Below are positions 1 to 38,758 of a DNA stretch of 64,000 nucleotides, one piece after another; the first letter of the stretch is position 1, and every line of letters begins with the position of its first letter. The translations under genes were made by a program, and so were the position numbers. This DNA is from Callorhinchus milii. Its lineage: Eukaryota. The notes beneath the pieces were generated by a model, which did no database searches, was not told where the DNA came from, and worked only from the letters and a program-made list of their open reading frames with translations. The stretch is taken from the NCBI RefSeq assembly GCF_018977255.1, contig NW_024704771.1, positions 744,001 to 808,000 of the forward strand, given 5' to 3'.

Positions 1-103
1 TCGATGTTTTACACAAAGGCTTCTCTCCCGGTGACGACGCTGAAGATCATCTTATTTATGATTGTAAATGTATACGACAATAATGGTCTGATTCTCCCTC
101 CAG

Positions 104-615
104 TTACAGTCACTCTGGATCCTGACACAGCCCATCGTCAGCTCATCCTGTCTGAGGACCTGACCAGTGTGAGACACGGAGACGAAGAGCAGCCGCTCCC
201 TGACTCCCCGAAGAGGTTTAGTAACTATCCCATTGTCCTGGGATCTGAGGGCTTCACATCGGGGAGACATTACTGGGAGGTGCAGGTGGGCAACAAGAGA
301 GAGTGGATTGTGGGATTGGCCGCAGAGTCTGTCAACAGGAAACAACCAATCACTTGGTCACCACAGGGTGGGGTCTGGGGGGTGTGGCTGAGGGCTGGGG
401 TCTATGATGCTCTGACGTCACCCCCCACCCGCCTGCCCCTGACAGTGAGACCCGGGAAGGTCGGGGTTTACATGGACTATGAGGGGGGACAGGTGTCATT
501 TTACAACGCTCACAACATGGCTCATCTCCACACTTTCACCCAAACTTTCACTGAGAAACTTTATCCTCTGTTCAGTCCCAGGTTTGGTTCTGAGCCTCTG
601 ACAATCTGTCGGTGA
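104..615 (+). CDS. Terminal B30.2 (PRY-SPRY) exon of an upstream butyrophilin-like paralog; rest of gene is left of the window
   Basis: Acceptor ctccctccag at 94-103, phase 1. Reads [11 protein letters not shown]...[14 protein letters not shown]...[16 protein letters not shown]...LYPLFSP, stop TGA 613-615. Flanks are near-identical to those of the gene A B30.2 exon. Confidence 0.9.
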
Positions 616-5207: not shown

Positions 5208-6290
5208 ACAATGTACAGGGTTTGAGATCATACCTTTCTGTGTTGAAGTCCAACTCTGCTGTTCTTTGTTCTTCAGTTTCGTTTAATTCGCCTTCTCTCT
5301 TTTCATAGCATTTTTATTTGTCCTTGAAAGGCTTGATCTTCGCTTCCGCATCTTTTAAGATTAAGAAAATTATTGGGAGGACTCCTGTTGGGAGGAATGA
5401 GTGAGAAGACTCAGTGGGAGGAGTCCTTGTTCAGAGGACTCCTGTGGGAGGACTTGTGTTTGGGAGGACTCCTTGTTGGGAGGACTCCTTTTGCCACTTT
5501 ATTGCAGAATATAGAATGGTGTGTGATTTTGTTGCAGAATACTGTGCATACCCCATATTTTGGTGCTTAAGCTCATCAACAATAGGAGATCCCCGAAAAA
5601 AATATGCCCATGACACTCCACTTTTTCCAATGAGGTATAAATCATGTTAATCGGTTATTGTGTTTTTAGCAGACAAACAAACAGACCTTTTTTCTATATT
5701 AGTTCAGATAATAATCCTTACATTTGATTTAGCACTTCATCACAGCTTTGAGGCGTCTCAAAGTGCTTCACAGGATATAATGTAAAGTGAATTGACTGAA
5801 AAATAAAATATTTTAAACTCCCGCAGTAACACTTTATTACAGACAGAGAAATAGATTCACCTTTTCCTCGTTTCTCCTGATGGATGTTGTGGTGTAATTT
5901 GAGGAATAGAATCATTTGCTGAAAGTTACTGTGGTTTAAAATGACAGTGAAGCCACACACAGCGTTAAATACATAAACCTGCAGTACCGCGTTACTGCCA
6001 ACAGATGGTGGTGTTGCACTGGGAAACTTCACCCCAATGTTCACAGTAAAACAACAATAATAATCATAATAATAATATTTGAGAAGTGCCTTTTCATATC
6101 AGGAGAACATCTCAAAGCGCTTCACAGGATTCACTGTAAACATATGAGCTGAGAAGTTACAGGACATAGTTACACAGTGAACCTCACATCAGTATAATTG
6201 CTGACGTCACACCTGAACCCGAGTAAATTCACCTTTTCCTCGTGTCTCCTGATGGATGTTGTGATGCGATTTGAGGAACAGAGTCATTTG
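4340..6290 (-). pseudogene. Remnant exons of an unidentified antisense gene (copy 1)
   Basis: AG/GT-bounded 58-nt exons at 6233-6290 and 5861-5918 (NDSI/VPQI..QHPSGE/DTRK), an acceptor at 5351, and a coding-like tract at ~4340-4600; contains stops. Confidence 0.4.
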
Positions 6291-6325: not shown

Positions 6326-8046
6326 CAGTGGAAGCCACTTAAGACGGACACGCCAGGGCCGGGCATTTTGTCCGAATTAAGAGGGGCCCTGAAGTTAACT
6401 GGTTTCAATGCATTAAATCTCACCCAGTTTTGTTCATCCAATTACTGCAGCAACAAACTACATTTGTACAGCGGCTTTCACGTCAGGAGGAAATTGAACC
6501 TATTTTATTGAAAACTTCTCTCAAGTCGGACTGCACAAGATCAGTGCGGCGTCTCTCTCTCTCTGCTGCTCGCAACGATGTCATGAAGTGCACTCTAACA
6601 CTTGTCATAGACTCCGCTCTTTAGTACAAAGCTTTCTGCCTCTCGCAGGCCAGTCAGAGCTGTGCCGGCCATCATGGTTGGGGCCTCGTTCTCCTCAGAG
6701 TTGCTGCCACTGTCATTCACGACTAGCGGCCGCTCGGCGACCACAGCTTCAGCCACGATGGCCTCCTGGTCCTGGGGATCACGGTAGAGTAGATCAGCAT
6801 CAATGTCCAGGAACTGGTCAGTGATCTGCCTCTCGCCCTCGGCCTCTGCGCTTGTCCTCCCCTCAGCCTCAGTGCAGGGAGCAGCGTCACCAGTCACAAA
6901 CCCGGCCTTTGTGAAGCAGTCGGACATGATCACAGGCTTCCTGCTCTCCCAGGCAATGGCAACCATGCCGATGGCATCCAGAGGCTGATGTGTCTCACCA
7001 CCTCTCCCCCCGTGTCATGGGGACTGATCACGCTGCCATCGATGGCGTCCAGGAGGCACTTTCATAGCTCCTTGCAGTAGGAGAGCTTCAGGTTTCGGAT
7101 GATCCCTTGACCCATGGGCTGGATCAGAGTGGTGTCCGGGGGGATCATCTCCAGGCAGATGTTCTCGAGGGTTGGAATGGGCAGGTGACGTGGTGCGCTG
7201 TCCACAAAAACAAGTATCTTACGCCCCTGCTCGACCAGCTCTGTGTCCCACTGTGTCAGCCACTCCTTAAAGATCCCTCTCATCATCCACACCATCTTGT
7301 TGGCCTTATAGGTGATGGGTAGAACAGTGAGATCGACCCCCTTCATACAGTGAGGGCACTGGCTCTTCCCGATGACCAGCGGTTTGCGCCGGTCGCTGCC
7401 GGTCATGTTAGCACAGGGCATCAGTGCGATGCTCTCCATTGCCCTCTTCACACGGCTCAGCGCCGTCCGGTGGAAATACAATCAGCCGTCTGTCCCTGGA
7501 CGTTAGTACAGCACTGTTTCCTCTGCGTTGTAGATGTCATCGGCGGCGTAGAATGAGAGCAGCACACTGCTGGTGTCAGCGCCCTCTGGGGCAGTGCTCT
7601 TGAGCTCTCCGGGAAGCAGCCTGTACATGATGTTGTTAAGTGCCTTCCAGCGGCTAAACCAGCCGTCAGTCACCGTGAAGCCCGGCTTCCCGAGGTCACG
7701 CGCCAGGCTCTCTGCTTTGGCTTTGAGGATGGGCCCATTGAGCATTTGCCCCTCAGTGGACGCCCTTTGGAACCACAGGAGAGTGTGCTCCACCTTGCGA
7801 TCTTTGCCTTTGCGATCCCTCTTCTTATGCAGACCAACATCGCCCTCGGCTGAGGAGGCCGCTGTGTGGCGCAGCTTCATCTCACTGGCGATGCTGTCAC
7901 CCAGTGTCGACTTCTTGACCCCAAGTCTTCTTGCCAGTTCTCGTAGCGGAGTCCCTCATGGCTCCATCTTGACTCTGTCTAACACTTCTGTCTTCTCCAA
8001 GAGCGTCCGAGACATTTTCTTCGACATGGCGGCTGTTTATCACGTG
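6326..8046 (-). mobile_element. Decayed pogo/Tigger-type (TIGD-like) DNA transposon with a pseudogenised transposase
   Basis: Kozak GCCGCCATG (ATG at 8027), psq-like HTH, CENP-B HTH (GPILKAKAESLA...DGWFSRWK), DDE_1 region (CANMTGSDRRKPLVIGKS, FVDSAPRH, IQPMGQGII). In-frame stops at 7956, 7503, 7482 and 7062, plus a frameshift near 6985. TA|CAGTGGAAGCCACTTAAG terminus-like sequence at 6324-6345. Confidence 0.88.
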
Positions 8047-8079: not shown

Positions 8080-8080
8080 N
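8080..8080. other. Single N (possible assembly join)
   Basis: The only ambiguous base I saw in the window. Confidence 0.9.
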
Positions 8081-14099: not shown

Positions 14100-14625
14100 T
14101 GCAGCTTGTGTCCTCTCCAGCACAGGGCTCCGCGAGCCTATCCCCCCCATTCCTGCTCGGCTTCACTGGCTCCCAATCCCTCAGGGAACCGATTATAAAA
14201 CCCTCGTTCTCACCTTCAAGGCCCTCCGTGTTCTTGCTCCCCTCTGCCTCTCCCGACCTCCTAATCCAACATCAGTCTGTCCGCTCCCTCCGCTCGGCAG
14301 ACACCGGCTGCTTCAGGTCCCCCCACACTTCCCACCACACCATTGGCAGTCGGGCATTCAGTATCTCTGCTCCCACACTCCGGAACTGTATCTCACAGTC
14401 CCTCCATCTCACCCCCTCATTTGCCTCCTACAGGTCCCATCTTCGACAGTGCCTTCGGCCACTCTCCCTCCCCCACTCCCACCCCTGCCCTTCACCCCTC
14501 CTGACCCCACTCCCACCCCTGCCCTTCACCCCCCCTGACCCCACTCCCAGCTCAGGTCCAAACCCCCTGACTGTCCAGCGCCCTGGGCCGTCTTTCCAAT
14601 ATGAAGGACGCTGTACAAGTGTAGT
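14100..14625 (+). mobile_element. L2 3' fragment
   Basis: RSLRSADTG...TIGSRAFSISAPTLRNCI, followed by an L2 tail. Confidence 0.8.
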
Positions 14626-17929: not shown

Positions 17930-19940
17930 AGACACACAGTGTGACACACACTGTACATTCAGAGACACACATACTCTCTCTCTGACCCACACTCATATAC
18001 ACACGGTGTCGCACACTGAGACACACCCTCTCACACACTCTCTCTCTCTAACTGCATTATACACTGTAAACACAATCTTATACACTCTGTCGCACACACT
18101 AAACACACATGTGCTCTTTCTGTTTCACACACGCTGTACACACAGTCTGATACTCTGTCAGGCGCACACACTGTACACACTGAGATCAAGTGTCACACAC
18201 ACTACACACACGATGTCACAAACACTACACTGAGATACACACTATCACACATACTATACACACTGTCACACACACTGAGACAGTGTCACACACACTGTCC
18301 ACACTAAGACACACTGTCACACACTGTACAAACACTGAGACACTGTCACACACACTGTGTACATTGAGACACACTGTCACACACACACTGTGTAGACTGA
18401 GCCACAGTCACACACACACTGTGTACATTGAGACACACTGTCACACACACACTGTGTAGACTGAGCCACAGTCACACACACACTGTGTACATTGAGACAC
18501 ACTGTCACACACACTCTATCACATACACAATGTACATCTATACACACACACTTGTACACTCGCTGTGCACACACATACACTCTTTAACACACCCTCTTTC
18601 TGTGCACACACACACACTCTTATACTCCCTCTCTGTGCAAAAACACACTGTTGCACATTGTCTCTGTACACACACACATTGTTTTATACTTTCTCTTTCT
18701 GTGCACACACACTCTTGTTCACTCTCTGTGTGCACACAGACATTTTTATACACTCTCAGTGTATGAACCACACTCTTGTACACACATTCTCTCTTTCTCT
18801 GCACACACACACACACACTGGGACACAATCTCTCTCTCTGTGCACACACACACTCTCTCTGTGCACACAGTCTTGTACTCTCTCTCTCTGAACACACATA
18901 CACACTCTCTACCACATACACAATGTACACACACACTCTTACAAACAATCTTGTACACTCTCTCTGCACACAGACACTCTCTGTATGTCACACACTGACA
19001 CACACTCTCTCTCTACACACACTCTTGTACACACACTCTCTCTGCACACATTCTCTCTACACACACACACTTGTACACTCTCACTGTGCACACACAGTCT
19101 TACACAGACTCTCTCTGTGCACACACTCTCTCTCTTCACACACACTGTTGTACACTCTATCTCTCTGTGCACACACAACAGTCTTGTACAGACTATCTCT
19201 CTCTCTGCACACACACACACTCTCTCTCTCTGCGCACACACTCTCTCTCTGCACCCACACTCTCTCTGCACACACACTGTTGTACTCTCTCTCTCTGTGC
19301 ACACACACACACTCTCTGCACACACACTGTTGTACTCTCTCTGTGCACACACTCTGTCTGCACACACACTCTGTCTGCACACACACTGTTGTACACTCTA
19401 TCTCTGTGCACACACAACAGTCTTGTACAGACTCTCTCTTTCTGTGCACACACATACACTCTCTCTGCACATACACACTCTCTGTGCACACTCTCTATCT
19501 CTCTGCACACACACTTTTGTACTCTCTCTCTCTGTGCACACACACTCTCTGCACACACACTGTTGTACTCTCTCTCTCTGTGCACACTCTCTATCTCTCT
19601 GCACACACACTGTTGTACACTGTATCTGTCTGTGCACACACAACAGTCTTGTACATAATTTCTCTCTCTCTCTGTGCACACATTCTCTCTCTCTGCACAC
19701 ACACTCTCTCTGCACACACTGTTATACTCTCTCTGTGTGCACACACACACTCTCTGCACACACACTGTTGTACTCTCTCTGTGTGCACACACAACAGTCT
19801 TGTACAGACTCTCTCTCTCTGTTTGCACACACTTACACTCTCTGTGCACACACACTCTCTCTCTGTGCACATACACACTCTTTATCTCTCTGCACACACA
19901 CTGTTATACACACACTCTCTCTCTCTGTACACACACACAG
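17930..19940. repeat. Compound CA/CT microsatellite and minisatellite array
   Basis: Recurrent cacacactgttgtactctctctctgtgca-like units. Confidence 0.9.
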
Positions 19941-19950
19941 ATCAGATGAA

Positions 19951-20032
19951 GGAAATTTCTCAGAAAACGATGTGTTTTAACAAACCCGGAAATTAAGCAG
20001 TTGCTGTTTTTGCTGCGGAACTGAAGGTAACT
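19951..20032 (+). promoter_or_regulatory. Candidate promoter / non-coding first exon of gene A (copy 1 of 3)
   Basis: GAS TTCTCAGAA 19957-19965, ETS CCGGAA 19986-19991, donor AAG|gtaact at 20026/20027. Copies have donors at 21625 and 23180. Confidence 0.45.
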
Positions 20033-23000
20033 GTGAGGAGTGACCAGACAGCAATGTGAGGAGTGACCAGACAGCAATGTGAGGAGTGACCGGGCCAGAC
20101 AGCAATGTGAGGAGTGACCAGACAGCAATGTGAGGAGTGACCGGGCCAGACAGCAATGTGAGGAGTGACCGGGCCAGACGGCAATGTGAGGAGTGACCGG
20201 GCCAGACAGCAATGTGAGGAGTGACCAGACAGCAGTGTGAGGAGTGACAGGGCCAGACAGCAGTGTGAGGAGTGACCGGGCCAGACAGCAATGTGAAGAG
20301 TGACCAGGCCAGACAGCAATGTGAGGAGTGACCAGGACAGACAGCAATGTGAGGAGTGACCGGGCCAGACAGCAGTGTGAGGAGTGACCAGGCCAGACAG
20401 CAATGTGAGGAGTGACCGGGCCAAACGGCAATGTGAGGAGTGACCAGGCCAGACGGCAATGTGAGGAGTGACCAGGCCAGACGGCAATGTGAGGAGTGAC
20501 CAGGCCAGACAGCAATGTGAGGAGTGACCGGGCCAGACAGCAATGTGAGGAGTGACCGGGCCAGACAGCACTGTGAGGAGTGACCGGGCCAGACAGCACT
20601 GTGAGGAGTGACCGGGCCAGACAGCACTGTGAGGAGTGACCGGGCCAGACAGCACTGTGAGGAGTGACCAGGCCAGACAGCAATGTGAGGAGTGACCGGG
20701 CCAGACAGCAATGTGAGGAGTGACCGGGCCAGACAGCAATGTGAGGAGTGACCGGGCCAGACAGCAATGTGAGGAGTGACCGGGCCAGACAGCAGTGTGA
20801 GGAGTGACCGGGCCAGACAGCAATGTGAGGAGTGACCGGGCCAGACAGCAGTGTGAGGAGTGACCGGGCCAGACAACAATGTGAGGAGTGACCGGGCCAG
20901 ACAGCAATGTGAGGAGTGACCGGGCCAGACAGCAATGTGAGGAGTGACCGGGCCAGACAGCAATGTGAGGAGTGACCGGGCCAGACAGCAATGTGAGGAG
21001 TGACCGGGCCAGACAGCAATGTGAGGAGTGACCGGGCCAGACAGCAATGTGAGGAGTGACCAGGCCAGACAGCAATGTGAGGAGTGACCGGGCCAGACGG
21101 CAATGTGAGGAGTGACCGGGCCAGACAGCAGTGTGAGGAGCTGCTTTCAACATCAACACTGAACATCACAGGACTTTTCCCCACTTTATATTGTGGGGAA
21201 TATTTGAGCTGCACTTTCCCTGTTTGTGGGGCTATAACCAGATTTCCACAGAAACCGAAACCTCTGGACATCGCCATCGCCACAGTCTTGTACATAATTT
21301 CTCTCTCTCTCTGTGCACACATTCTCTCTCTCTGCACACACACTCTCTCTGCACACACTGTTATACTCTCTCTGTGTGCACACACACACTCTCTGCACAC
21401 ACACTGTTGTACTCTCTCTGTGTGCACACACTTACACTCTCTGTGCACACACACTCTCTCTCTGTGCACATACACACTCTTTATCTCTCTGCACACACAC
21501 TGTTATACACACACACTCTCTCTCTGTACACACACACAGATCAGATGAAGGAAATTTCTCAGAAAACGATGTGTTTTAACAAACCCGGAAATTAAGCAGT
21601 TGCTGTTTTTGCTGCGGAACTGAAGGTAACTGTGAGGAGTGACCAGACAGCAATGTGAGGAGTGACCAGACAGCAATGTGAGGAGTGACCAGACAGCAAT
21701 GTGAGGAGTGACCAGACAGCAATGTGAGGAGTGACCAGGACAGACAGCAATGTGAGGAGTGACCGGGCCAGACAGCAGTGTGAGGAGTGACCAGGCCAGA
21801 CAGCAATGTGAGGAGTGACCGGGCCAAACGGCAATGTGAGGAGTGACCAGGCCAGACGGCAATGTGAGGAGTGACCAGGCCAGACGGCAATGTGAGGAGT
21901 GACCAGGCCAGACAGCAATGTGAGGAGTGACCGGGCCAGACAGCAATGTGAGGAGTGACCGGGCCAGACAGCACTGTGAGGAGTGACCGGGCCAGACAGC
22001 ACTGTGAGGAGTGACCGGGCCAGACAGCACTGTGAGGAGTGACCGGGCCAGACAGCACTGTGAGGAGTGACCAGGCCAGACAGCAATGTGAGGAGTGACC
22101 GGGCCAGACAGCAATGTGAGGAGTGACCGGGCCAGACAGCAATGTGAGGAGTGACCGGGCCAGACAGCAATGTGAGGAGTGACCGGGCCAGACAGCAGTG
22201 TGAGGAGTGACCGGGCCAGACAGCAATGTGAGGAGTGACCGGGCCAGACAGCAGTGTGAGGAGTGACCGGGCCAGACAACAATGTGAGGAGTGACCGGGC
22301 CAGACAGCAATGTGAGGAGTGACCGGGCCAGACAGCAATGTGAGGAGTGACCGGGCCAGACAGCAATGTGAGGAGTGACCGGGCCAGACAGCAATGTGAG
22401 GAGTGACCGGGCCAGACAGCAATGTGAGGAGTGACCGGGCCAGACAGCAATGTGAGGAGTGACCAGGCCAGACAGCAATGTGAGGAGTGACCGGGCCAGA
22501 CGGCAATGTGAGGAGTGACCGGGCCAGACAGCAGTGTGAGGAGTGACCAGGCCAGACAGCAATGTGAGGAGTGACCGGGCCAGACAGCAATGTGAGGAGT
22601 GACCGGGCCAGACAGCAATGTGAGGAGTGACCGGGACAGACAGCAATGTGAGGAGCTGCTTTCAACATCAACACTGAACATCACAGGACTTTTCCCCACT
22701 TTATATTGTGGGGAATATTTGAGCTGCACTTTCCCTGTTTGTGGGGCTATAACCAGATTTCCACAGAAACCGAAACCTCTGGACATCGCCATCGCCACAG
22801 TCTTGTACATAATTTCTCTCTCTCTCTGTGCACACATTCTCTCTCTCTGCACACACACTCTCTCTGCACACACTGTTATACTCTCTCTGTGTGCACACAC
22901 ACACTCTCTGCACACACACTGTTGTACTCTCTCTGTGTGCACACACAACAGTCTTGTACAGACTCTCTCTCTCTGTTTGCACACACTTACACTCTCTGTG

Positions 23001-24462
23001 CACACACACTCTCTCTCTGTGCACATACACACTCTTTATCTCTCTGCACACACACTGTTATACACACACACTCTCTCTCTGTACACACACACAGATCAGA
23101 TGAAGGAAATTTCTCAGAAAACGATGTGTTTTAACAAACCCGGAAATTAAGCAGTTGCTGTTTTTGCTGCGGAACTGAAGGTAACTGTGAGGAGTGACCA
23201 GACAGCAATGTGAGGAGTGACCAGACAGCAATGTGAGGAGTGACCGGGCCAGACAGCAATGTGAGGAGTGACCAGACAGCAATGTGAGGAGTGACCGGGC
23301 CAGACAGCAATGTGAGGAGTGACCGGGCCAGACGGCAATGTGAGGAGTGACCGGGCCAGACAGCAATGTGAGGAGTGACCAGACAGCAGTGTGAGGAGTG
23401 ACAGGGCCAGACAGCAGTGTGAGGAGTGACCGGGCCAGACAGCAACGTGAAGAGTGACCAGGCCAGACAGCAATGTGAGGAGTGACCAGGCCAGACAGCA
23501 GTGTGAGGAGTGACCAGGCCAGACAGCAATGTGAGGAGTGACCGGGCCAGACAGCAGTGTGAGGAGTGACCTGGCCAAACGGCAATGTGAGGAGTGACCT
23601 GGCCAAACGGCAATGTGAGGAGTGACCAGGCCAGACGGCAATGTGAGGAGTGACCAGGCCAGACGGCAATGTGAGGAGTGACCGGGCCAGACAGCAATGT
23701 GAGGAGTGACCGGGCCAGACAGCAATGTGAGGAGTGACCGGGCCAGACAGCAATGTGAAGAGTGACCGGGCCAGACAGCAGTGTGAGGAGTGACCTGGCC
23801 AAACGGCAATGTGAGGAGTGACCTGGCCAAACGGCAATGTGAGGAGTGACCAGGCCAGACGGCAATGTGAGGAGTGACCAGGCCAGACGGCAATGTGAGG
23901 AGTGACCGGGCCAGACAGCAATGTGAGGAGTGACCGGGCCAGACAGCAGTGTGAGGAGTGACCAGGCCAGACAGCAGTGTGAGGAGTGACCAGGCCAGAC
24001 AGCAATGTGAGGAGTGACTGGGCCAGACAGCAGTGTGAGGAGTGACCTGGCCAAACGGCAATGTGAGGAGTGACCTGGCCAAACGGCAATGTGAGGAGTG
24101 ACCAGGCCAGACGGCAATGTGAGGAGTGACCAGGCCAGACGGCAATGTGAGGAGTGACCGGGCCAGACAGCAATGTGAGGAGTGACCGGGCCAGACAGCA
24201 ATGTGAGGAGTGACCGGGCCAGACAGCAATGTGAGGAGTGACCAGGCCAGACAGCAATGTGAGGAGTGACCGGGCCAGACAGCAATGTGAGGAGTGACCG
24301 GGACAGACAGCAATGTGAGGAGTGACCGGGCCAGACGGCAATGTGAGGAGTGACCGGGACAGACAGCAATGTGAGGAGTGACCGGGCCAGACGGCAATGT
24401 GAGGAGTGACCGGGCCAGACGGCAATGTGAGGAGTGACCAGGCCAGACAGCAATGTGAGGAG
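20030..24462 (+). repeat. 28-bp minisatellite arrays (20030-21140, 21630-22655, 23185-24462)
   Basis: Unit gtgaggagtgaccgggccagacagcaat, with 23-bp deletion variants; roughly 37-46 units per array. Confidence 0.95.
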
Positions 24463-24572
24463 CTGCTTTCAACATCAACACTGAACATCACAGGACTTTT
24501 CCCCACTTTATATTGTGGGGAATATTTGAGCTGCACTTTCCCTGTTTGTGGGGCTATAACCAGATTTCCACA

Positions 24573-24583
24573 GAAACCGAAAC
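24573..24583 (+). promoter_or_regulatory. ISRE-like element (also at 21251-21261 and 22766-22776)
   Basis: GAAACCGAAAC fits the GAAANNGAAA IRF/ISGF3 consensus; ~690 bp upstream of the gene A ATG. Confidence 0.5.
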
Positions 24584-25260
24584 CTCTGGACATCGCCATT
24601 CCGGACACACGATTAATTTACTGTTAACAGTGAAGATTCTTCTCTTTCAGAACAAAGCCTCAACAGTCAGTGTCGAAAATTGTTATTTTACCCTTAAAAT
24701 AACGCCTTAACTTTACTGCGATTCCAGTTACAGGATTCACTGGTTTCACTTTCACATGTGGTGATGTGGAGTTTAAATATGAAATAAATGTTCTCTATTG
24801 TCAGGTTTGTGTCAGTAGTAAAGCGGGAGCTCTGCAGTCAGTTTATTCCCAGTTTGTGGTTTAAACGCTGAGAATTGGAGGCAAGTGAGGAGGGAAGGGA
24901 ATGGGAGCTCCTCTCTGACCTGCACCATGTTGGGGTGAATAAGGAGCGGCTGTGAGGAGGGGGAGGGGAGGGGGACATTACAGCACTTACACATAACATG
25001 TTTCATGTTTCTTCCCCAAACCATCTGATGGAGACCCCCAGTGCGGGGCCAGGGGGGGCCTCACTGTCACAGTTAAAGATCCCACATCACTATTCCAACA
25101 GAGAAGGCAGTTTGTTCGCTGTGGGTGTGAATGCAAACAACATGTTTTATTAATTATGTTTTATATTTTATTGATTATATTTGATCACAAATCTCTGTGT
25201 GTAATGATCTGATTTGCTGTGTTGTAACCAGTTCTGATCCCATTGTGAAGGTCCTCGAAG

Positions 25261-25318
25261 ATGAGCTGCAAACACTGTATTCAGGTCCTGTGGCTTGTGC
25301 TTCCCCTCTCACTGACTG
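25261..25318 (+). CDS. Gene A (butyrophilin-like) signal-peptide exon
   Basis: MSCKHCIQVLWLVLPLSLT, phase-1 donor gtaagg; acceptor at 25231/25232. Confidence 0.8.
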
Positions 25319-25749
25319 GTAAGGAAACACATTGAATCTGTTTGATTTCTGTTGGTGTAAATTGCTGAAGATAAAGGTAAATGATGTGCACAGACTGGTT
25401 GCCGCCTTCCCTCCACAAAATACAGTCAGAGCGCTTTACAGTATATCCTATGAAGATTTTGAGACTTCTCAGCGATGTGATAATCATAGAATAATCAGAA
25501 AATCATAGAGTTATATAGCACAGAAGGAGGCCATTCAGCCCAGTGGGCCAACTCTTTTAAAAGTGCCATCCAAATCAATCCCAATCCCTCGCTCTCTCCC
25601 CATAGCCGCGCAAACTTGTCCATCACAAATAATTATCTATAAGGTGCTATATTAAATGCAAGGATTATTATTATTAACTCAGCGACGGAGTTTGTCTGAG
25701 TCAGTGTGACTGAAAATCCCAACTGTATCCATTGTTTGTTATTAAGCAG

Positions 25750-26097
25750 AGAGATTCATAGTCAGTGGCCCGGCCCTCCCTGTCCCAGCCATTGCTGGTT
25801 CGGATGTTGTCCTGGACTGTAAGTGTTCCACAGACCTGCCACGAGAGAGTGTGGAGGTGAAATGGTTCAGGACAAGATACGACTCCCCTGTGCACTTATA
25901 CAAGGAGGGACGACAGCAACTGGAAACACAGGATGAAGCCTACAGACACAGAACACAACTGTTTGTAGAGGAGTTTATCAACGGCGATGTGTCTCTCAGA
26001 CTGGGAGATGTGCGGGTGTCAGACAACGGACAGTACACATGTTTGGTTAGATACGCCGGATGGCATGAAGAGGCAGAGATAGAGTTGAAAGTTATAG
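25750..26097 (+). CDS. Gene A IgV exon (348 nt)
   Basis: ERFIVSGP..VVLDCKC..EVKWFR..VHLYKEG..AYRHRTQLF..GDVSLRLGDVRVSDNGQYTCLV; AG/GT, phase 1-1. Confidence 0.95.
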
Positions 26098-26258: not shown

Positions 26259-26827
26259 GCTCGCCTCCACTGGCTCCCCATCCCCCAGAGGATTGATCTC
26301 AAGATCCTCATCCTCACCTACAAGGCCATTCACGGCCTTGCTCCCTCCTACCTCTCTGACCTACTATCCCCCTACCTACCTGCCCGTACCCTCCGTTCCT
26401 CCGGCTCCGGTCTGCTCCATGTCCCCCGCCCCAACCGCCCTACCATCGGTGGTCGGGCCTTCAGCCTCTCAGCCCCCAGGCTCAGGAACTCCATCCCCCA
26501 GCGCCTTCGCCGCTTCCTCCCTCTCCTCCTTCAAGGCCGGTCTCAAAACCTTTCTCTTTGACCGAGCCTTCAGCTCCCCTCTCGACTCTCTTCCCCCTCC
26601 TCGCTCCCTCCCTTCCCTCCCCTCCCCTCACCCTGACCATTTCCCCCCTCCTCGCTCCCTCCCTTCCCTCCCCTCACCCTGACCATTTCCCCCCTCCTCG
26701 CTCCCTCCCCTCACCCTGACCATTTCCCCTCTGCTCGGGTCATAACCAAACTGTGCAGCGCCTTGGGAAGTCCTCCTGACGTGAAAGGCGCTTTATAAAT
26801 TAAATCTTGTTGTTGTTGTTGTTGTTG
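26259..26827 (+). mobile_element. Young 5'-truncated L2 copy with a (TTG)n tail
   Basis: Near-identical to 60845-61369; TGCTC at both junctions. Confidence 0.92.
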
Positions 26828-26880: not shown

Positions 26881-27156
26881 GCCTTGGCAGTCAGCCTTGG
26901 ATTCACGTTGATGGGCAGCACAGTGATGGTGTGAGTCTGCGGTGTGAATCCAGTGGATGGTTCCCATCACCAGAGGTTCTGTGGTTTGATGATCAGGGAA
27001 ACAACTTAACAACACTCAGTAACTGGACGGTCAGAGAGGATTCCAAAGGTCTCTTCAGTGTTAAAGGACAAATAGAAATAATCTATTCAAACAACAAGAT
27101 CAGGTGTCTGATTCACAATGAAGAAAATGAACAAGAAGGAAAACTCCAAATCTCAG
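26881..27156 (+). CDS. Gene A IgC exon (276 nt)
   Basis: GLGSQPWIHVDG..VSLRCESSGWFPSPEVLW..IRCLIHN..KLQIS; AG/GT, phase 1-1. Confidence 0.95.
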
Positions 27157-28416: not shown

Positions 28417-28536
28417 ACGAGTTCTTTCCCAAAGTGCCAGTGGGTTTGGTGGTTTCCGCACTGCTCTTAGGACTTGCCATATTGGTGCTGAGTGTTCTTG
28501 TCCCCTACAGTTTAAAACAGCGCCGAGAGATCAAAG
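28417..28536 (+). CDS. Gene A transmembrane exon (120 nt)
   Basis: DEFFPKVPVGLVVSALLLGLAILVLSVLVPYSLKQRREIK; same length and phase as the gene B TM exon. Confidence 0.9.
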
Positions 28537-28852: not shown

Positions 28853-29063
28853 AACCCCAGCCCAGATCCCAGCTCAGATCCCAGCTCAGACCCCAGCTCA
28901 GACCCCAGCTCAGACTCCAGCTCAGACCCCGGCTCAGACCTCAGTTCAGACCCCAGTTCAGATCCCAGCTCAGACCCCTTCTCAGATCCCAGCTCAGACC
29001 CCAGGTCAGCCCCCAGCTCAGATCCCAGCTCAGACCCCAGCTCAGCCCCCAGCTCAGACCCCA
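28853..29063 (+). repeat. 12-bp tandem repeat expanded inside an L2 3' end
   Basis: Unit cccagctcagac; follows an L2-like RAFSLSAPTL tract. Confidence 0.85.
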
Positions 29064-29269
29064 GTCAGCATTGTGAGGGCTTTGGGATATCCGCCGTTGT
29101 GGAAGGTGCTGTGTAAATGTAAATGTTATTGTAATTCAAACCTCCTGTAATTGTGTTGAGCTGCACTTTGTGTAGTTTCTAACTGTTAATGTTGTAAACA
29201 TATAGACTGAGCATTAAACAATACTGGATTCAGGAGCGGTTTCTAACAGTTTTGTTTTGTATCCTCCAG

Positions 29270-29287
29270 ATCTTGAGAAGAGAGTGG
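29270..29287 (+). CDS. Gene A cytoplasmic microexon (18 nt, DLEKRV)
   Basis: ttttgtatcctccag| ... |gtaagt, phase 1-1. Confidence 0.75.
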
Positions 29288-31142: not shown

Positions 31143-31169
31143 AGTGGAAAAGGATTCGCAGCTGCGCAG
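31143..31169 (+). CDS. Gene A pre-B30.2 microexon (27 nt, EWKRIRSCA)
   Basis: ttcttcttgtttccag| ... |gtaaga; splices in frame to VTVTLDP. Confidence 0.88.
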
Positions 31170-32371
31170 GTAAGAGTCTGAGTGACCAAGTAACCAACAT
31201 CCAACACACTGCCCCCCCCACACACACACACAATCACATCACCCCCCACACACACACACACACAATCACCCCCCACACACACACACAATCACATCACCCC
31301 CCACACACACACACACACAATCACATCACCCCCCACACACACACACAATCACATCACCCCCCACACACACACACAATCACATCACACCCCACACACACAC
31401 ACAATCACATCATCACCACACCCCCAACACACAGACCCTGACACTCCCATCCGCTTACAAACACACACATCCCTCACACACATTCCCCCACACACACCCT
31501 CACATCCCCTCACACACTCAAATGCCCCCCCACACACATTCACCCCACCCCGCACACCCCCTCACATTTCCCCACACGCTCACATCCCCCCACACACTCA
31601 CAACCCCCCACACTCTCACATCCCCCCACACGCTCACATCCCCCACACCCTCACATCCCCCACACCCTCACATCCCCCACACCCTCACATCCCCCCAGAC
31701 ACTCACATCGCCCCACACACTCACATCCCCCCACACACCCTCAAATCACCCCACGCGCTTACATTCCCCCACGCGCTCACATCCCCCCACACACTCACAT
31801 CCCCCCACACGCTCACATCCCCCCACACCCTCACATCCCCCCACACCCTCACATCCCCCCACACCCTCACATCCCCCCAGACACTCACAAACCCCCACAC
31901 CCTCACATCCCCCCACACGCTCACATCGCCCCACACACTCACATCCCCCCACACACCCTCAAATCACCCCACGCGCTCACATTCCCCCACGCGCTCACAT
32001 CCCCCCACACGCTCACATCCCCCCACACGCTCACATCCCCCCAAACGCTCACATTCTGCCACACACTCACATCCCCCCACACACCCTCAAATCACCCCAC
32101 GCGCTCACATTCCCCCACATACATACCCTCACATCTACTCCACACATAGATCCTCACATACACCCCCATTCACACATGCCCCCACACACACCCTCACAGC
32201 CCCTCACACACACACCATCACAGCTCATCCCCCACAAACATCCTTATATCCCTGAACACACACACCCCATACACCACCACCAACACACACATCCTCACAG
32301 CCACCTCACACCCACAACAGATCCCCCCCACCCACAAATACCCACACATCACCCCAAACACACACGGAGAT

Positions 32372-32880
32372 TGGTACCTGTAAGAATGCGGGCAGCAGAG
32401 TTTTGGATCACCTGGATTTTATGGATGGTAGTAGAGGGGAGACCGGCGAAGAGGGTGTTTGAATAGTACAGCCGAGAGGTGACAAAGGCATGGACCAGGG
32501 TTTCAGCGGCTTTTGGAGTGAGGTATTGGCGGAGACGGGCAATGTGTCGGAAGTGGAAGAAAGTGGTGCTGGTGAGGGACTGGATATGGGGGAGGATGGA
32601 TAACTGGGGGTCGAACCTGACACCAAGGTTGCATACGGGTTCGGATAGTTTTAGGGGGAGGTCGGGTAGATGGAGGAGGTGAGAAGCATGCAGTTTTAGA
32701 CTTTGACGAGAGCCAAAGTTTATGGCTTCCATCTTGTCGATGTTCAACTGAAGGAAATTCGCGCTTATCCAGCTCCTGAGGTCTGACAGACAGCTGACAG
32801 AACATCAGGGGATGGGGGGCTGCAAAGTGAGGCGGAAAAATAGAGTTGGATGTCATCCGCATACTTGTGGAAGTGTACCC
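32372..32880 (-). mobile_element. L2 fragment nested in the satellite
   Basis: NLGVRFDPQLSILPHI..ETLVHAFVTSRLYYSN..IQNSAARIL. Confidence 0.88.
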
Positions 32881-33849
32881 CATAATAATAATAATAATAA
32901 TAATAATAATCCTTGCATTTGATATAGCGCTTTTCACGTCGGGAGGACGTCCCAAAGCGCTTCACAGAACACACTGTAAAGTGAATTGACTGTATATTTG
33001 TGGGCGAACGCGGCAGCCAATTGCGCACAACAATATTCCCCCCACGCGCACACACACGCCCCCCAAACGCACACTCACGTTCCTCCACAACACTCTCACG
33101 TCCCCCCAGCACATGCACGCTCACGTTCCTCCACACACACCCTCATGTTGCTCCACATGAACCCTCACCTCCCCCCCACATGCACCCTCACATTCCTCCA
33201 CACACACACCTATTCATCACTCCCACACACACCCTCACGTCCCCTACACGCACCCTCATGAGCCCCCACAAGCACCCTCACGTCCACCCCACACGCACCC
33301 TCACGTCTGCCCCACACACAGCCTCACGTCTGCCCCACACACAGCCTCACGTCCACCCCACACGCACCCTCACATCTGCCCTACACGTAGCCTCACGTCC
33401 CCCACACACGCACCCTCACGTCCACCCCACACGCACCCTCACATCCACCCCACACGCACCCTCACATCCGCCCCACACGCACCCTCACCTCCCCCCACAC
33501 GCACCCTCACATCCCCCCCACACGCACCCTCACGTCCACCCCACACGCACCCTCACATCCACCCCACACGCACCCTCACGTCCGCCCCACACGCACCCTC
33601 ACCTCCCCCCACACGCACCCTCACATCCCCCCACACGCACCCTCACGTCCCCCCCACACGCAGCCTCACGTCCCCCCCACACGCACCTTTGTGTCCCCAA
33701 CACGAACCCTCACGTCCCCCGCACATGCACTTTCACGACCCCCACACGCACCCTTACGTCCCCCCCACCCGTAAACTCTCACCTCCCCCCATACGTGCCC
33801 TCACATCCCCCACACGCACCTTCACATCCCCCACATGCACCCTCACATT

Positions 33850-34175
33850 ATAATAATAATAATAATAATCCTTGCATTTGATATAGCGCTTTTCACGTCG
33901 GGAGGACGTCCCAAAGCGCTTCACAGAACATACTGTAAAGTGAGTTGACTGTATATTTGTGGGCGAACGCGGCAGCCAATTGCGCACAGCAATGTCCCAC
34001 AAACAGTCGTAGATTGAAAATGACCAATTTATTATTGTTTTTGGTTTTGGAGGGATTATTATTAGGCTCTGTGTGGAGTAAGGAAACTTGCCCAAGGTTT
34101 CGCCCTCTGCCTGGAATTGAACTCAGGTCTCTCACTTGCAAAGCGAGTGCTCTAACCACTGAGCTACAGGACTCC
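33850..34175 (-). mobile_element. Full-length tRNA-derived SINE with an L2-type tail
   Basis: Reverse complement begins GGAGTCCTGTAGCTCAGTGGTTAGAGCA (A box), GAGTTCAATTCC (B box), (TAT)n tail. Other headed copies at 44575-44948 (+), 51855-52228 (+), 56866-57176 (-) and 61730-62077 (-); many headless copies. Confidence 0.9.
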
Positions 34176-37100
34176 ACACACGCACCCTCACGTCCGCCCA
34201 TGAGGCACACTCACTTCCCCTGCACAAGCACGCTCATGTCCCCCGCACACACACCCTCAGACAGCTTCATGTCACCCCCACACGCACCCTCACGTCACCC
34301 CCACACGCACCATGTCTTGACCCTCACGCAGCCTCACGTCCCCCCCACATGTACCGTCATGTCCCCCGCACACGCACCATCACACAGCCTCACGTTCACC
34401 TCACACGCACCCTCACATCCCCCGCACATGCACCCTCACGTCCCCCGCACACTCACCCTCAAGCAGCCTCACGTTCACCCCACACGCACCCTCATGTCCC
34501 CCGCACATGCACACTAACGTCCCCCCACGCACGCACCCTCACGTCACCCCCAAACGCACCCTCACCTCCCCCCACACGCACCCTCACGTCACCCCCACAT
34601 GCATCCTCACGTCAACCCCACATGCACCCTCACGTCTCCCGCACACGCACCCTAACGTCCACTCCACACGCACCCTCACGTTCCCCCGACCCGTATCCTC
34701 ACGTCCCCCACACACGCACCCTCACGCACACCCCGCACGCACCGTCACATTACCCCCACACGCACCATTACGTGCACCACGCACATGACCCTCACGTCCC
34801 CTCTGCACGCGCACCCTCACATCTCCACCACACGCACCCTGACATTCCTCCACAACACCCTCACATCCCCCCCACACGAACCCTCACATCCCCCCCACAC
34901 GCACCCTCACGTTCATCCACACTCACCCTCACGTCCCCCGCACACGAACCCACACATCCCACATGAACCCTCACGTCACCCCCACATGCGCCCTGTCTTG
35001 ACCCCCACACACCCGCACTTCCTCCTCACACGCACCAACACGACCCCCCAACACACAGCCTCACATTGCCCCCACACGCACCTTTTCGTCGCCTCCACAC
35101 AAACCCTCACTTCCCCCCCAAACGCACCCTCACGTCCAACCTACACGCACCCTCACGTTCCCCGCACACACAACCTCATGTCCCCCGCACACGCACCCTC
35201 ACGTTTAACCCACACGCACCCTCATGTCCCCGCCACATGCACCCTCATGTCCCCCTCACACGCACCCTCACCTCACCCCGACACAACCTCACGTCCCCTA
35301 CCACGCAACCTCACGTCTCCCCACACGCACCCTCACGTCCCGCTCACATGCACCCTTACATCCACCCCCCATACACCCTCATGTCACCCCCACCATTCAC
35401 CCTCAAGTTGCCAGAAATGCAGCCTCACGTCACTCCCACAGGCACCCTCATCTCCATCCCACACGTAACTTCACGCCCCCACCCCACACGCACATTCGTG
35501 TCCCACACACGCCCCCTCATGTTCCTCCACTTACCCTCATGTTCCTCCACACACACACTCACATCCCCTGCACACACAATCTAACGTCCCCCCCCACACA
35601 CACCCTCACGTCCCCCCCACACGCACCCTCACATCCCCACACACGCACCCTCACGACTCCCCCCACACGCACCCTCACGTCCCCCCCACACGCGCCCTCA
35701 CATGCACCCCACAGGGACCCTCATAGCCCCCCACTCGCAACTTCACCTGGCCGCCATACGCACCCTCACGTCAATCCCACACGCACCCTCACGTCCCCCC
35801 CACACACACCCTCACATCCCCCCCACACGCACCCTCACGTCCCCCCACATGCACCCTCATGTCCCCCCCCACACGCACACTCAGGAGCCCCCAAACGCAC
35901 CCACACGTTCCCCCCCACCACACACACTCTCACATCGCTCCCACACGCACCCTCACATCCCCCTACTTGCATCCTCACGTCCCTCTCACACGCATCTTCA
36001 CATCCCCCACACCCACCCACACGACGCCACCACACGCACCCACACGACCCCCCGACATGCACCCTCACTTTCCCCCCCACACTCACATACACAACCTGAC
36101 TTGAGCCCCACACACACTGTCACTTCCCCCACACGCACGCTCACCTCCAGCCCACATGCACCATCACGTCCTCCCTATGCACACCCTCACATACCCGCGC
36201 ACCCTAACCTCCCTCCCACATGCACATTCACATCCCCCCCACACACTCACAACCCCACCACATGCACCCTCACGACCTCCCCACACGTACACTCACTTGC
36301 CCCTACACGCACCCTTACGTCCCCCCCAGACGCACCCTCACGTCTCCCCCACACGCATCCTCACATCACTCCCACATGCACCCTTACTTCCCCCACACAC
36401 TACCATCACGTACCCACCCACACATGCACCTTGTCTTGAACCCCACACACTAGCACATCCCCCTCACACACACCCTCACATCCACCCACACACACCCTCA
36501 TATCCCCCCACACACACCCTCACATCCCACCACGCGCACCCTCGCGTCCCCCCACACACACCCTCACCTCCCACAAACACACCCTCACCTCCCACACACA
36601 CACCCTCACGTTCACCCCCACACACACCTTTTCGTCATGCCCACACACACCCTCACTTCACCCCTCACGCACCCTCACGTACACCCCACATGCACCCTCA
36701 CGTCACCTCCACACGCACCCTCATGCCCCCCATACGCACCCTCACCTCGCCCCCACATGCACCCTCTCATCCTCCCCCCCCCACACGCAGCCTCACTTCC
36801 TCCCACATGCAACCTCATGTCCCCCCACACGCACATCCTCACGTTCCCCCCCATACGCACCCTCATCTCCTCCCCCGCACACACTCTCACATTCCCCCAC
36901 ACATACACTCACATCTCCCCACACACACCCTCACATCCCCCCCACACACACCCTCACATCGCCCCCACACGCACCCTCACGTCCCTCCCACACGCATCTT
37001 CACATCCCCCCACACGCACCCTCACATCCCCCCCATACACAATCTGACATGAGCCCCACTCACACCCTCACGTCCCCCCACGCGCACCCTCACCTGCCCC

Positions 37101-38228
37101 CACGCCCACCCTCACGTCCCCACCATGCGCACCGTCACCTCCCTCCCACATGCACACTCACGACCCCCCCCACGGGCACCCTCCGGACCCTCCCACATGC
37201 ACACTCACATGACCCAACATGCACACTCATGTCCCCCCAGACGCACCCTCACATCTCCCCTACACGCATCCTCACGTCGCTCCCACATACAGTTACTTCC
37301 CTCACACACTACCCTCACGTGCCCCCCACACATGCACCTTGTCTTGACCCCCACACACCAGCACATCCCCCTCACAAACACACTCATCTCAACCCCACAC
37401 ACACCCTCTCGTCCCCCAACACATGCAGCCTCACTTACCCCCACACGCACCCTCGCGTCTCCCCCACACACACCCTCACGTTCACCCCCAAACGCACCTT
37501 TTCGTCATGCCCACACACACCCTCACTTCTCCCACATGCAACCTCACGTCGCCCCACATGCGCAACCTCACGTCCCCCCCCACACGCACCCTCACCTCCA
37601 CCCCGCACCCTCACCTCCGCCCCACACACACCCTCACGACTTCCCAAACACACCCTCAAGTCCCCCCCACACGAACACTCATCTCCAGCTCACACGTACC
37701 CTCATGTCCCACCCACACGCACCCTCATTTACCCCCACATAATTACCTCACAGACCCCCAAAAGACACACCTTCAGCCCCACCCCACACAACCTCACATC
37801 CCACACAACTTCACATCCACCCCACACACAACCTCACTTCCCCTCACACACATACCCTCACATCCCCACCCCCACACACACACCCCCACACACACAACCA
37901 CACATACCCCCACACACACCCCCACTCATGCCCCCACACACACTCACACATACCTCCACACACACCCTCACATGACCACACACACGCACACACCCTCACA
38001 TCTCCCCCCCCCTCACACCCACACATCTCTCCCCCTCACACCCACACATTCCCTCCCACACAAACCCCTCCCCCACAGACACACAGACTCTCAGCCTTTT
38101 TTCTGGATTCTGTTCCCAGGAGACGTCGTTGTTTTACACAAAGGCTTCTCTCCCGGTGACGACGCTGAAGATCATCTTATTTATGATTGTAAATGTGTCC
38201 GACATTAATGGTCTGATTCTCCCTCCAG

Positions 38229-38758
38229 TTACAGTCACTCTGGATCCTGACACAGCCCATCCCCGGCTCATCCTGTCTGAGGACCTGACCAGTGTGAGAC
38301 ACGAAGACGAACTGCAGTCGCTCCCTGACTCCCCGAAGAGGTTTAGTGAAGATCCCATTGTCCTGGGATCTGAGGGCTTCACATCGGGGAGACATTACTG
38401 GGAGGTGCAGGTGGGCAACAAGTCATGGTGGACTGTGGGATTGGCCACAGAGTCTGTCAACAGGAAACAACTAATAACATGGACACCAGAGGATGGGGTC
38501 TGGGGGGTGGGGCTGTGGGGTGGGGACTGTTATGAGGCTCTGACGTCACCTCGTACCCGCCTGACCCTGACAGTGAGACCCGGGAAGGTCGGGGTTTACA
38601 TGGACTATGAGGGGGGACAGGTGTCATTTTACAACGCTGACAACATGGCTCATCTCCACACTTTCACCCAAACTTTCACTGAGAAACTTTATCCTCTGTT
38701 CAGTCCCGGGTATAATATTGATGGGGACAATCCTGAGCCTCTGACAATCTGCCGGTGA
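38229..38758 (+). CDS. Gene A terminal B30.2 exon (530 nt)
   Basis: Acceptor at 38228, TGA 38756-38758. Exon lengths sum to 1386 nt, an open 461-aa leader-IgV-IgC-TM-B30.2 protein. Confidence 0.93.

Follow-up and report, generated by a model that had tools for sequence, protein, structure and literature searches.

The question raised by this locus of Callorhinchus milii is how three nearly identical tandem units came to lie upstream of a butyrophilin gene, here called gene A, and whether they have any bearing on its expression. Butyrophilins are fast-evolving immune regulators, and to our knowledge almost nothing is known about their control outside mammals. The analysis covers a 64-kb stretch of DNA (the window), throughout which satellites are abundant.

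Gene A is complete and BTN1A1-like, with the IgV-IgC-TM-B30.2 layout of a butyrophilin. Its leader exon (25232..25318, + strand) contains the ATG at 25261 and follows an acceptor AG at 25230-25231. The IgV exon (25747..26097, +) and the IgC exon (26881..27156, +) match Pfam V-set (4.5e-12 on 25749-26096) and C2-set_3 (1.2e-22 on 26883-27155), respectively. A hydrophobic transmembrane exon (28417..28536, +) and small exons at 29270-29287 and 31143-31169 lead to the B30.2 (PRY-SPRY) exon with the stop codon (38229..38758, +; PRY 8e-24, SPRY 2.2e-26). The elements that place a protein in the BTN/BTNL group, i.e., a V-set, a butyrophilin-type IgC and a TM segment followed by B30.2, are all present, so that the immune gene proposed in a first-pass annotation of this DNA is, by its domains, a member of the butyrophilin family. 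The exons (449 aa) are 98% identical, over the full query, to P0001 ("butyrophilin subfamily 1 member A1-like", C. milii), the residual difference consisting of one small exon and one codon omitted from the query.

The triplication upstream of gene A looks real and very recent, and covers its 5' region. The units, 1639, 1515 and 1802 bp long, follow each other in tandem. Unit 1 (19643..21281, +) is composed of CT/CA low-complexity sequence (19643-19937), a core (19938-20026), a minisatellite (VNTR) of 41 repeats (20027-21140) and a block containing a hairpin and an interferon-stimulated response element, or ISRE (21141-21281). Unit 2 (21282..22796, +) lacks a 40-bp low-complexity segment and has a VNTR of 38 repeats at 21626-22655, and unit 3 (22797..24598, +), with 47 repeats at 23181-24462, ends 16 nt beyond the ISRE, within the start of a conserved exon-1-like block. 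Outside the VNTR, the units differ by one mismatch and one 40-bp indel in 525 aligned bases. The 5' duplication breakpoint lies inside a CT/CA-rich low-complexity tract (18000..19642, +) that runs on into the units. The junction between units 1 and 2 (21269..21300, +) reads CATCGCCAT-CGCC-ACAGTCTTG, in which CGCC is a 4-nt templated filler; the second junction (22784-22815) is identical, filler included. Identical novel junctions, together with a single-copy relative (gene0, see below), identify a tandem segmental duplication by unequal exchange, and are consistent with the order of events proposed at first pass, one duplication and then an unequal crossover. The triplicated unit itself had been described there too; its repeat structure is beyond doubt, and all coordinates given for its motifs (GAS, ETS, donors, hairpin and ISRE) were reproduced. 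There are no N runs at the locus, and the unit count was read in one assembly, GCA_018977255.1, from which both the window and the locus copy L001 derive.

Like other VNTRs, the minisatellite is a head-to-tail array whose unit falls in the 10-100 bp range, with variant repeats scattered through it. TRF reports a period of 28 and 158.7 copies, in one row covering all three arrays and the sequence between them. Across the three arrays, 20 distinct forms of the 28-bp repeat occur, one being the truncated terminal repeat. The repeat maps are distinct yet mosaic: the 5' part of the unit 1 array is common to unit 3, and its middle part is common to unit 2. Three different mosaic maps favour distinct loci over a simple assembly repeat. 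Half of the variant positions are CpG/CpA changes, suggesting germline methylation, which an active CpG-type promoter would not normally show.

The neighbouring paralogue, gene0 (L002), contains the module once: its core is 100% identical, it has 28 repeats, the ISRE is intact and the 3' flank uninterrupted. The triplicate state is therefore derived, and it arose long after the genes themselves had duplicated: divergence between units is at most 0.2%, against 1.2-5% between gene A and gene0. In an older paralogue, L003, only about two degenerate proto-repeats are present, and the minisatellite grew from such proto-repeats. Gene A and gene0 are 98.8-100% identical in the 5' region and 95.1% identical in the next intron (Fisher p=1.5e-4); in the core, 87 of 87 positions agree where the intron baseline predicts about four differences (p=0.013). 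The stretch of low divergence is about 1 kb long, takes in non-exonic DNA and could reflect a tract of gene conversion instead of constraint.

The core (23092..23180, +, with copies at 19938-20026 and 21537-21625) is a candidate non-coding first exon plus a piece of promoter. It contains the motifs TTCTCAGAA and CCGGAAAT and ends in the splice donor AAG/GTAACT, the last exon bases being 20026, 21625 and 23180. The donor in each unit, already pointed out at first pass, has a PWM score of 4.62, in the top 1.25% of GTs of the window and within the range of the proven donors of gene A (2.97-5.59). The proposed acceptor for an exon starting at 25232 also holds up: the AG has its last base at 25231, 29 nt separate it from the ATG at 25261, and six paralogues conserve the acceptor together with the 48 nt before it, which include a pyrimidine tract and a CTGAT site resembling a branch point. 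A competent 5' splice site upstream of a conserved acceptor is what would be expected of an alternative first exon. The core donor is not conserved in L003, which reads GAAG/ATTATT at the homologous place.

Directly 3' of the triplicated unit lies the exon-1-like block (CTCTGGACATCGCCA...AACA, 24584..24668, +), which the first-pass annotation did not include. In L003 and L004 it ends in CAG/GTAAGT, with a PWM score of 8.75, and in a fragment at 47648 in CAG/GTCAGT (4.56). Gene A and gene0 have lost 1 bp here and read ACA/GTCAGT, with a score of -0.88. The two donors are thus reciprocal: L003 and L004 keep a perfect old donor, and gene A and gene0, where it is crippled, have the core donor, which is absent from L003. 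That the old donor is crippled exactly where AAG/GTAACT occurs suggests a switch of first exon, and gives some support to use of the core donor.

The signal originally seen in the units was the co-occurrence of GAS, ETS, hairpin and ISRE motifs, of which only the last stands out. The GAS TTCTCAGAA (19957, 21556 and 23111) does match the palindrome TTCNNNGAA; in the window, GAS motifs are not enriched (19 matches against 16.5 expected), and neither are matches to the ETS site CCGGAAAT (19986, 21585 and 23140; three against 2.0). Perfect 8-bp hairpins such as TTCCCCAC-N8-GTGGGGAA (21177, 22692 and 24499; 8-bp stem) have a background of 0.7 per kb in the window. The homologous stretch of L003 contains no GAS, its ETS match is altered to CTGGAAAT and its hairpin is broken. 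With three of the four motifs at chance frequency, the co-occurrence comes down to the ISRE.

ISRE-1, GAAACCGAAAC, is found at 24573..24583 (+) in the proximal, ancestral copy, with duplicated copies at 21251 and 22766; ISRE-2, GAAAGTGAAAC, at 24743..24753 (-), lies outside the triplicated unit and had escaped the first-pass annotation. Both match the core GAAANNGAAAC, for which six matches were observed against 0.57 expected, reducing to three independent sites. Two of these, 170 bp apart, precede the leader exon of gene A. Gene0 retains ISRE-1, as does L003 in the form GAAACCGAAAG, and the element is lost in L004 and in the fragment at 47648; the ISRE-2 half-site TGGTTTCACT is invariant across five paralogous sequences. 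No clear footprint is seen over ISRE-1 among related promoters, its flanks being similarly identical. By their match to the core, these are candidate elements for an interferon response. In the single-copy state, the ISRE is directly 5' of the conserved exon-1-like block. As had been proposed, the duplication left ISREs 305 and 345 bp ahead of the GAS that follows; the element itself predates the event.

The reading to which we incline combines these observations: a recent triplication of a butyrophilin 5' region, a switch of first exon and a candidate promoter driven by ISREs. The ancestral single module would have contained, in order, the CT/CA tract, an 89-bp core with the strong donor, the 28-bp minisatellite and a 140-bp block ending in the ISRE. 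The first duplication would have been a non-homologous join, leaving the templated filler of 4 nt; the two copies would then have become three by unequal exchange, and slippage and exchange within the minisatellites would have given the mosaic arrays. With the 3' breakpoint 16 nt past the ISRE, the extra units carry core and donor, minisatellite and ISRE-1, and the exon-1-like block and ISRE-2 remain single, outside the copied unit. In genes of this clade, expression may be driven by a region with IRF/ISRE sites that lies about 0.5-0.7 kb before the leader exon. Where the ancestral first-exon donor was crippled, in the lineage leading to gene A and gene0, the upstream core donor would have replaced it, and the core would now form the 5' end, a non-coding first exon spliced to 25232. 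Within 3.5 kb, gene A would then have four ISRE cores and three candidate first exons of identical sequence, and the extra units could add start sites or IRF occupancy; their effect on expression, if any, is probably modest. The event itself looks like a tandem duplication of an ordinary kind, recent and set in DNA rich in repeats, for which a regulatory reading is plausible.

The most serious alternative, possible though clearly less probable, is that the triplication and the growth of the minisatellite are neutral by-products of repeat-dense DNA prone to breakage and unequal exchange, without effect on expression and with motifs that are incidental or redundant. The breakpoint within a 1.9-kb CT/CA tract in a window filled with satellites fits such an origin, as do the background frequencies of GAS, ETS and hairpin, the confinement of the module to the youngest clade and the CpG-decay variants of the VNTR, which suggest methylated, non-promoter DNA; the units are also too young for any trace of selection. 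However, chance motifs would not readily account for ISRE cores that are paired and above expectation, nor neutrality for a core without any of the roughly four differences predicted between gene A and gene0, and the reciprocal donors suggest that the core donor is in use.

The model of the first-pass annotation, in which every unit combines a first exon with a promoter inducible by interferon (GAS and ETS, and the ISRE of the preceding unit 300-345 bp upstream), and copy number is a heritable dial of inducibility, seems doubtful to us. It can draw on the strong donor and conserved acceptor, on the ISREs that duplication set 305 and 345 bp ahead of the core that follows and on human precedents: BTN3A and BTN2A1 respond to interferon-gamma with transcript levels that depend on factors of the RFX enhanceosome, and BTN3A promoters are transactivated by NLRC5 (PMC7753138), while a report on human gene-proximal VNTR eQTLs describes VNTRs that modulate expression (PMC8024321). 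However, its GAS and ETS are unenriched, and absent and altered, respectively, in L003; unit 1 has no upstream ISRE, so the three units are not equivalent, and unit number comes from one assembly only. A still bolder version is quite improbable: a germline copy-number dial, in which, within one young butyrophilin lineage, the first-exon switch set an interferon-responsive non-coding exon before a newborn minisatellite, the cassette of promoter, exon and ISRE amplified, and a polymorphic unit number sets the interferon induction of a butyrophilin that is an innate or gamma-delta T-cell ligand gene. We also consider it unlikely that the count of three is an assembly error, made by wrongly joining a genuine duplication or heterozygous alleles that differ in VNTR length, because, although near-identical sequence outside the VNTR is hard for assemblers and the copy number relies on GCA_018977255.1, an assembler cannot invent the filler junction, making at least one tandem duplication real, and the different repeat maps, the private 40-bp indel of one unit and a locus free of N runs also argue against it.

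Under the favoured reading of triplication and first-exon switch, the locus would record how a 5' region evolved in stages: about two proto-repeats becoming a minisatellite of 28-47 repeats, loss of the old first-exon donor, gain of a new upstream donor and then triplication of the cassette. If the ISRE pair is functional, interferon/IRF control of butyrophilin-family genes would date to the base of the jawed vertebrates, and if unit number varies among animals, the locus would provide a natural series for promoter or enhancer dosage.

The human BTN3A1-3 and BTN2A2 promoters contain an SXY module and are under NLRC5/CIITA and interferon-gamma control (PMC7753138). The shark genes resemble them in belonging to the butyrophilin family, in their layout (leader, IgV, IgC, TM, short exons, B30.2) and in putative 5' elements of immune-inducible type; unlike them, they have an ISRE pair as the candidate element, not S-X-Y boxes, and are lineage-specific paralogues, not orthologues. 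All three interferon types are reported from cartilaginous fishes in one account (PMC6640115), and the elephant shark has interferon and IFIT genes (PMC3688568). Two standard ISREs, the ISG15-type GGGAAACCGAAACTG and the reporter GGGAAAGTGAAACTA, have the very 11-nt cores found at 24573(+) and 24743(-) (PMC9907019). In contrast to these, the shark flanks lack GG 5' of the core and carry C at the 3' end where the standard elements have T, and the species is a chimaera.

Minisatellites that modulate expression include the INS VNTR, the MAOA uVNTR and the 28-bp HRAS1 minisatellite. Like gene-proximal VNTRs, the shark array has a short unit (28 bp) in 28-47 head-to-tail copies with variant repeats, lies less than 2 kb from the gene start and varies in length between paralogous copies; unlike them, minisatellite and flanks are together repeated three times as a higher-order unit of 1.5-1.8 kb. 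In UGT1A and the clustered protocadherins, an array of alternative first exons shares one set of downstream exons. The first-pass model resembles these in that several first exons in tandem, all with a donor and an upstream region of their own, would be spliced to a single acceptor. Whereas those arrays are old, divergent and coding, the candidate exons of gene A are non-coding, identical and extremely young. If transcription starts 5' of the core, two upstream ATGs inside it count against the favoured reading.

The triplication of the 5' cassette of gene A, the butyrophilin gene downstream of it, is real, very recent and lineage-specific, and overall it is an ordinary tandem segmental duplication grown by unequal exchange. 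Unit 1 occupies window positions 19643-21281, unit 2 positions 21282-22796 and unit 3 positions 22797-24598, and all motifs placed there by the first-pass annotation were recovered at their coordinates. In every unit, a low-complexity segment of CT/CA (295, 255 and 295 bp in units 1 to 3) is followed by a core of 89 bp, a 28-bp minisatellite and a post block of 141 bp, which is cut short to 136 bp where unit 3 ends. With the minisatellite set aside, a single mismatch and a 40-bp indel are all that separates the units. The two unit boundaries share the junction sequence CATCGCCAT-CGCC-ACAGTCTTG, in which the four-nucleotide filler repeats the CGCC before it, a signature of templated insertion. 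As the same filler is present twice, the junction was formed one time, and as such a junction is beyond an assembler's invention, at least one duplication must be real. That there are three units is likely, since they hold three different arrays, with the copy number taken from one assembly (the fetched locus L001 is byte-identical to the window).

The arrays contain 41, 38 and 47 repeats in units 1, 2 and 3, respectively, and their variant-repeat maps are mosaic: the first 12 repeats of unit 1 are shared with unit 3 and the following 29 with unit 2, while an internal three-fold HHEE... block is private to unit 3. The maps thus describe three distinguishable copies with exchanged segments. Together with the identical junctions, they fit the order of events proposed earlier, a single duplication followed by unequal exchange. 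The array is a typical minisatellite, and gene-proximal VNTRs are reported to affect expression in humans (PMC8024321). Changes between CpG and CpA at repeat positions 14 and 23 make up 54 of the 106 variant calls among the repeats (20027-24462), which hints at germ-line methylation of the array. Every 28-bp repeat also contains a donor-like AAT/GTGAGG (PWM 3.69, a rough score). A minus-strand open reading frame of 516 codons through the VNTR (23058-24608) gave just sub-threshold noise against Pfam and was rejected as coding; it results from the 28-bp (84-nt) periodicity. A transposon origin was rejected for the unit: the core, VNTR and post block were found only upstream of close butyrophilin paralogues, with a collinear degenerate homologue in one of them (L003) and no sign of a mobile element. 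Rfam families gave no match at E<=0.1 in the 17-27 kb part of the window.

The upstream regions of five fetched paralogues served for comparison. In gene0, the paralogue directly upstream on the scaffold, the module architecture is present exactly once: a low-complexity tract precedes a minisatellite of 28 repeats, the core is identical to that of gene A at 87 of 87 positions, and the post block holds the hairpin and GAAACCGAAAC. Its 3' flank is intact (...CATCGCCATTCCGG...) and the 5' breakpoint region is likewise unbroken. The triplication is therefore derived, and it is young: divergence between units is at most 0.2%. In L003, a collinear older paralogue (protein P0006, 81% protein identity), the place occupied by 28-47 copies in gene A and gene0 holds about two degenerate proto-repeats (5500-5600), so the 28-bp array arose within the gene A/gene0 lineage and L003 shows how a minisatellite looks at its birth.

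Gene A and gene0 are 1.2% apart in the 5' region, against 4.9% in the intron past the leader exon. Mismatches number 9 over the 762 positions that run from post block to acceptor and 21 over 426 positions of the next intron (Fisher p=1.5e-4); over the 87 positions of the core there are none (p=0.013 if the intron rate applied). The low-divergence tract measures about 1 kb and takes in the intron's first 150 nt; gene conversion would account for it equally well as selection.

Gene A is a complete butyrophilin. The model assembled from its exons is 98% identical to P0001, a C. milii protein of 459 residues annotated as 'butyrophilin subfamily 1 member A1-like isoform X1', and Pfam matches to V-set, C2-set_3, PRY and SPRY cover every domain tested for the family, which gives the immune gene of the first-pass annotation its name. 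It consists of a leader exon (25232-25318, with the ATG at 25261), IgV (25747-26097), IgC (26881-27156) and transmembrane (28417-28536) exons, two small exons (29270-29287 and 31143-31169) and a B30.2 exon (38229-38758). The acceptor of the IgV exon is a NAGNAG (aag/cag, 25744-25749), and it is the upstream AG that serves in the annotated protein. In the annotated isoform X2 (P0002) the in-frame transmembrane exon is skipped, which would attach the Ig domains straight to the cytoplasmic part. P0001 maps exactly to scaffold MU249860.1 of GCA_018977255.1, which puts the window at 744001-808000. Many butyrophilin paralogues are located on the same scaffold. The last exon of gene0 (P0003) is at window positions 4-615, the locus fetched for it (L002) ends at 7615, and gene B, a butyrophilin of another subfamily, has its IgV exon at 50244-50640.

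All six paralogues keep the acceptor at 25231 together with its pyrimidine tract and a branch-point-like CTGAT, which makes it very likely that genes of this butyrophilin family have an upstream non-coding exon. A candidate, overlooked in the module as originally described, is an exon-1-like block (CTCTGGACATCGCCA...AACAG, 24584-24668) directly 3' of ISRE-1, the ISRE core at 24573. The block is conserved in gene A, gene0, a fragment at 47648-48085, L003 (5730-5812) and L004 (6413-6490); in L004, with only 70% protein identity, similarity begins exactly at the block. Nothing is alignable upstream of the acceptor region in L005 and L006, where upstream homology does not extend beyond -77. At its end L003 and L004 have the donor CAG/GTAAGT (PWM 8.75) and the fragment CAG/GTCAGT (4.56), while in gene A and gene0 a 1-bp deletion leaves ACA/GTCAGT (-0.88); these scores are rough, with donor frequencies after published vertebrate tables. 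Gene A and gene0 have instead a core donor, AAG/GTAACT, which scores 4.62, in the top 1.25% of all GTs and within the range of the proven donors of gene A (2.97-5.59). The homologous place in L003 reads GAAG/ATTATT. The block donor is thus crippled where the core donor is present, a reciprocal pattern in two lineages that suggests that the gene A/gene0 lineage moved from an ISRE-proximal exon to a core exon; it is the best support found for the donor proposed earlier. The candidate core exon would include an upstream open reading frame of 16 codons if transcription began 5' of 23100. Exact look-ups of P0001 and a search with the 137-residue N-terminus returned genome- or annotation-derived proteins only and no RNA-derived contigs, and the retrieved gene ranges are of coding sequence, without UTR information. 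A search for a paper that describes how 5' UTR exons are arranged in butyrophilin genes found none.

Co-occurrence of GAS, ETS, hairpin and ISRE motifs had been put forward as the signal of an interferon-response module, but three of the four are at background. GAS (TTCNNNGAA) matches 19 times in the window, against 16.5 expected, and ETS (CCGGAART) three times, against 2.0, all three being copies of one site; neither count is evidence of enrichment. The hairpin is one of 46 perfect 8-bp hairpins in the window. In L003 the GAS stretch is missing, the ETS match is changed (CTGGAAAT) and the hairpin is broken, while the ISRE core is retained as GAAACCGAAAG. The argument therefore comes down to the ISRE. 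GAAANNGAAAC has six matches in the window versus 0.57 expected, a number reached by none of the shuffles. Once copies are collapsed, three independent sites are left: the triplicated ISRE-1, ISRE-2 (GAAAGTGAAAC, 24743-24753, minus strand), which lies outside the unit 170 bp 3' of ISRE-1 and has a paralogous copy at 47826, and a third at 54709. Two independent cores 170 bp apart, no more than 660 bp from the leader exon, are unlikely by chance (about 0.006 expected in 700 bp, in a post hoc test). TGGTTTCACT in ISRE-2 is unchanged in five paralogous sequences while its flanks diverge. Both cores occur unchanged in standard ISREs used in reporters, GGGAAACCGAAACTG (ISG15) and GGGAAAGTGAAACTA (PMC9907019), a likeness in sequence only. 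The ISRE was rejected as a trait of the wider family: the GAAAGAGAAAG match in L004 is part of a GA-microsatellite and was set aside, and L005 and L006 have no homologous sequence that far upstream.

At its 3' end the copied segment breaks off 16 nt inside the exon-1-like block. Every extra unit therefore has a minisatellite and an ISRE-1 in addition to the candidate core exon, without the body of the ancestral block and without ISRE-2; what was copied is a cassette in which a plausible non-coding first exon is combined with one of the two ISRE cores. Duplication does place ISRE-1 copies upstream of core 2 (305 bp) and core 3 (345 bp), as had been noted, but no such copy precedes core 1, so the units are not all equivalent. 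Where the module is single-copy, ISRE-1 lies in intron 1 if the core exon is used and otherwise immediately 5' of the ancestral first exon, not before a promoter in the sense first proposed. The earlier observation is thus confirmed and its interpretation upheld in part; copy number as a dosage dial for interferon inducibility is a hypothesis we consider rather improbable.

In humans, NLRC5 or CIITA drives the SXY modules of the BTN3A and BTN2A2 promoters, and the transcript levels that BTN3A1-3 and BTN2A1 reach after interferon-gamma are dependent on factors of the RFX group (PMC7753138). This is a precedent for immune-inducible butyrophilin control, although the elements differ, being ISRE cores in gene A. 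The elephant shark has interferon and IFIT genes (PMC3688568) and all three interferon types are reported for cartilaginous fishes (PMC6640115), so the pathway is available.

The copy at 47560-48085, 91% identical to the gene A upstream region 24583-25002, has two minisatellite proto-repeats ahead of it and ISRE-1 deleted. It sits upstream of gene B. As a gene B promoter it was rejected: protein identity over the exons of gene B is just 30-41%, in contrast to the 91% upstream, and no leader exon follows, making 47648-48085 an orphan fragment.

Several repeats were also seen. C/A-rich satellite, with GC skew down to -0.79 and long spurious 'PHTHT' reading frames, fills the large gene A intron that precedes the B30.2 exon (31200-38100), and the intron past the transmembrane exon contains 18 copies of a 12-bp tandem repeat, ACCCCAGCTCAG (28854-29068). 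By eye, the long reading frame 57804-60470 (within 57804-61217) resembles a LINE reverse transcriptase. The sequence directly 3' of it (60845-61369) has 5'-truncated copies in both orientations at 26259-26825, inside gene A intron 2, and at 40264-39960, 2217-1880 and 14150-14398. Three adjacent minus-strand reading frames at 6595-7880 look, again by eye, like remnants of pogo/Tigger-type DDE transposases, and a single N is present at position 8080.
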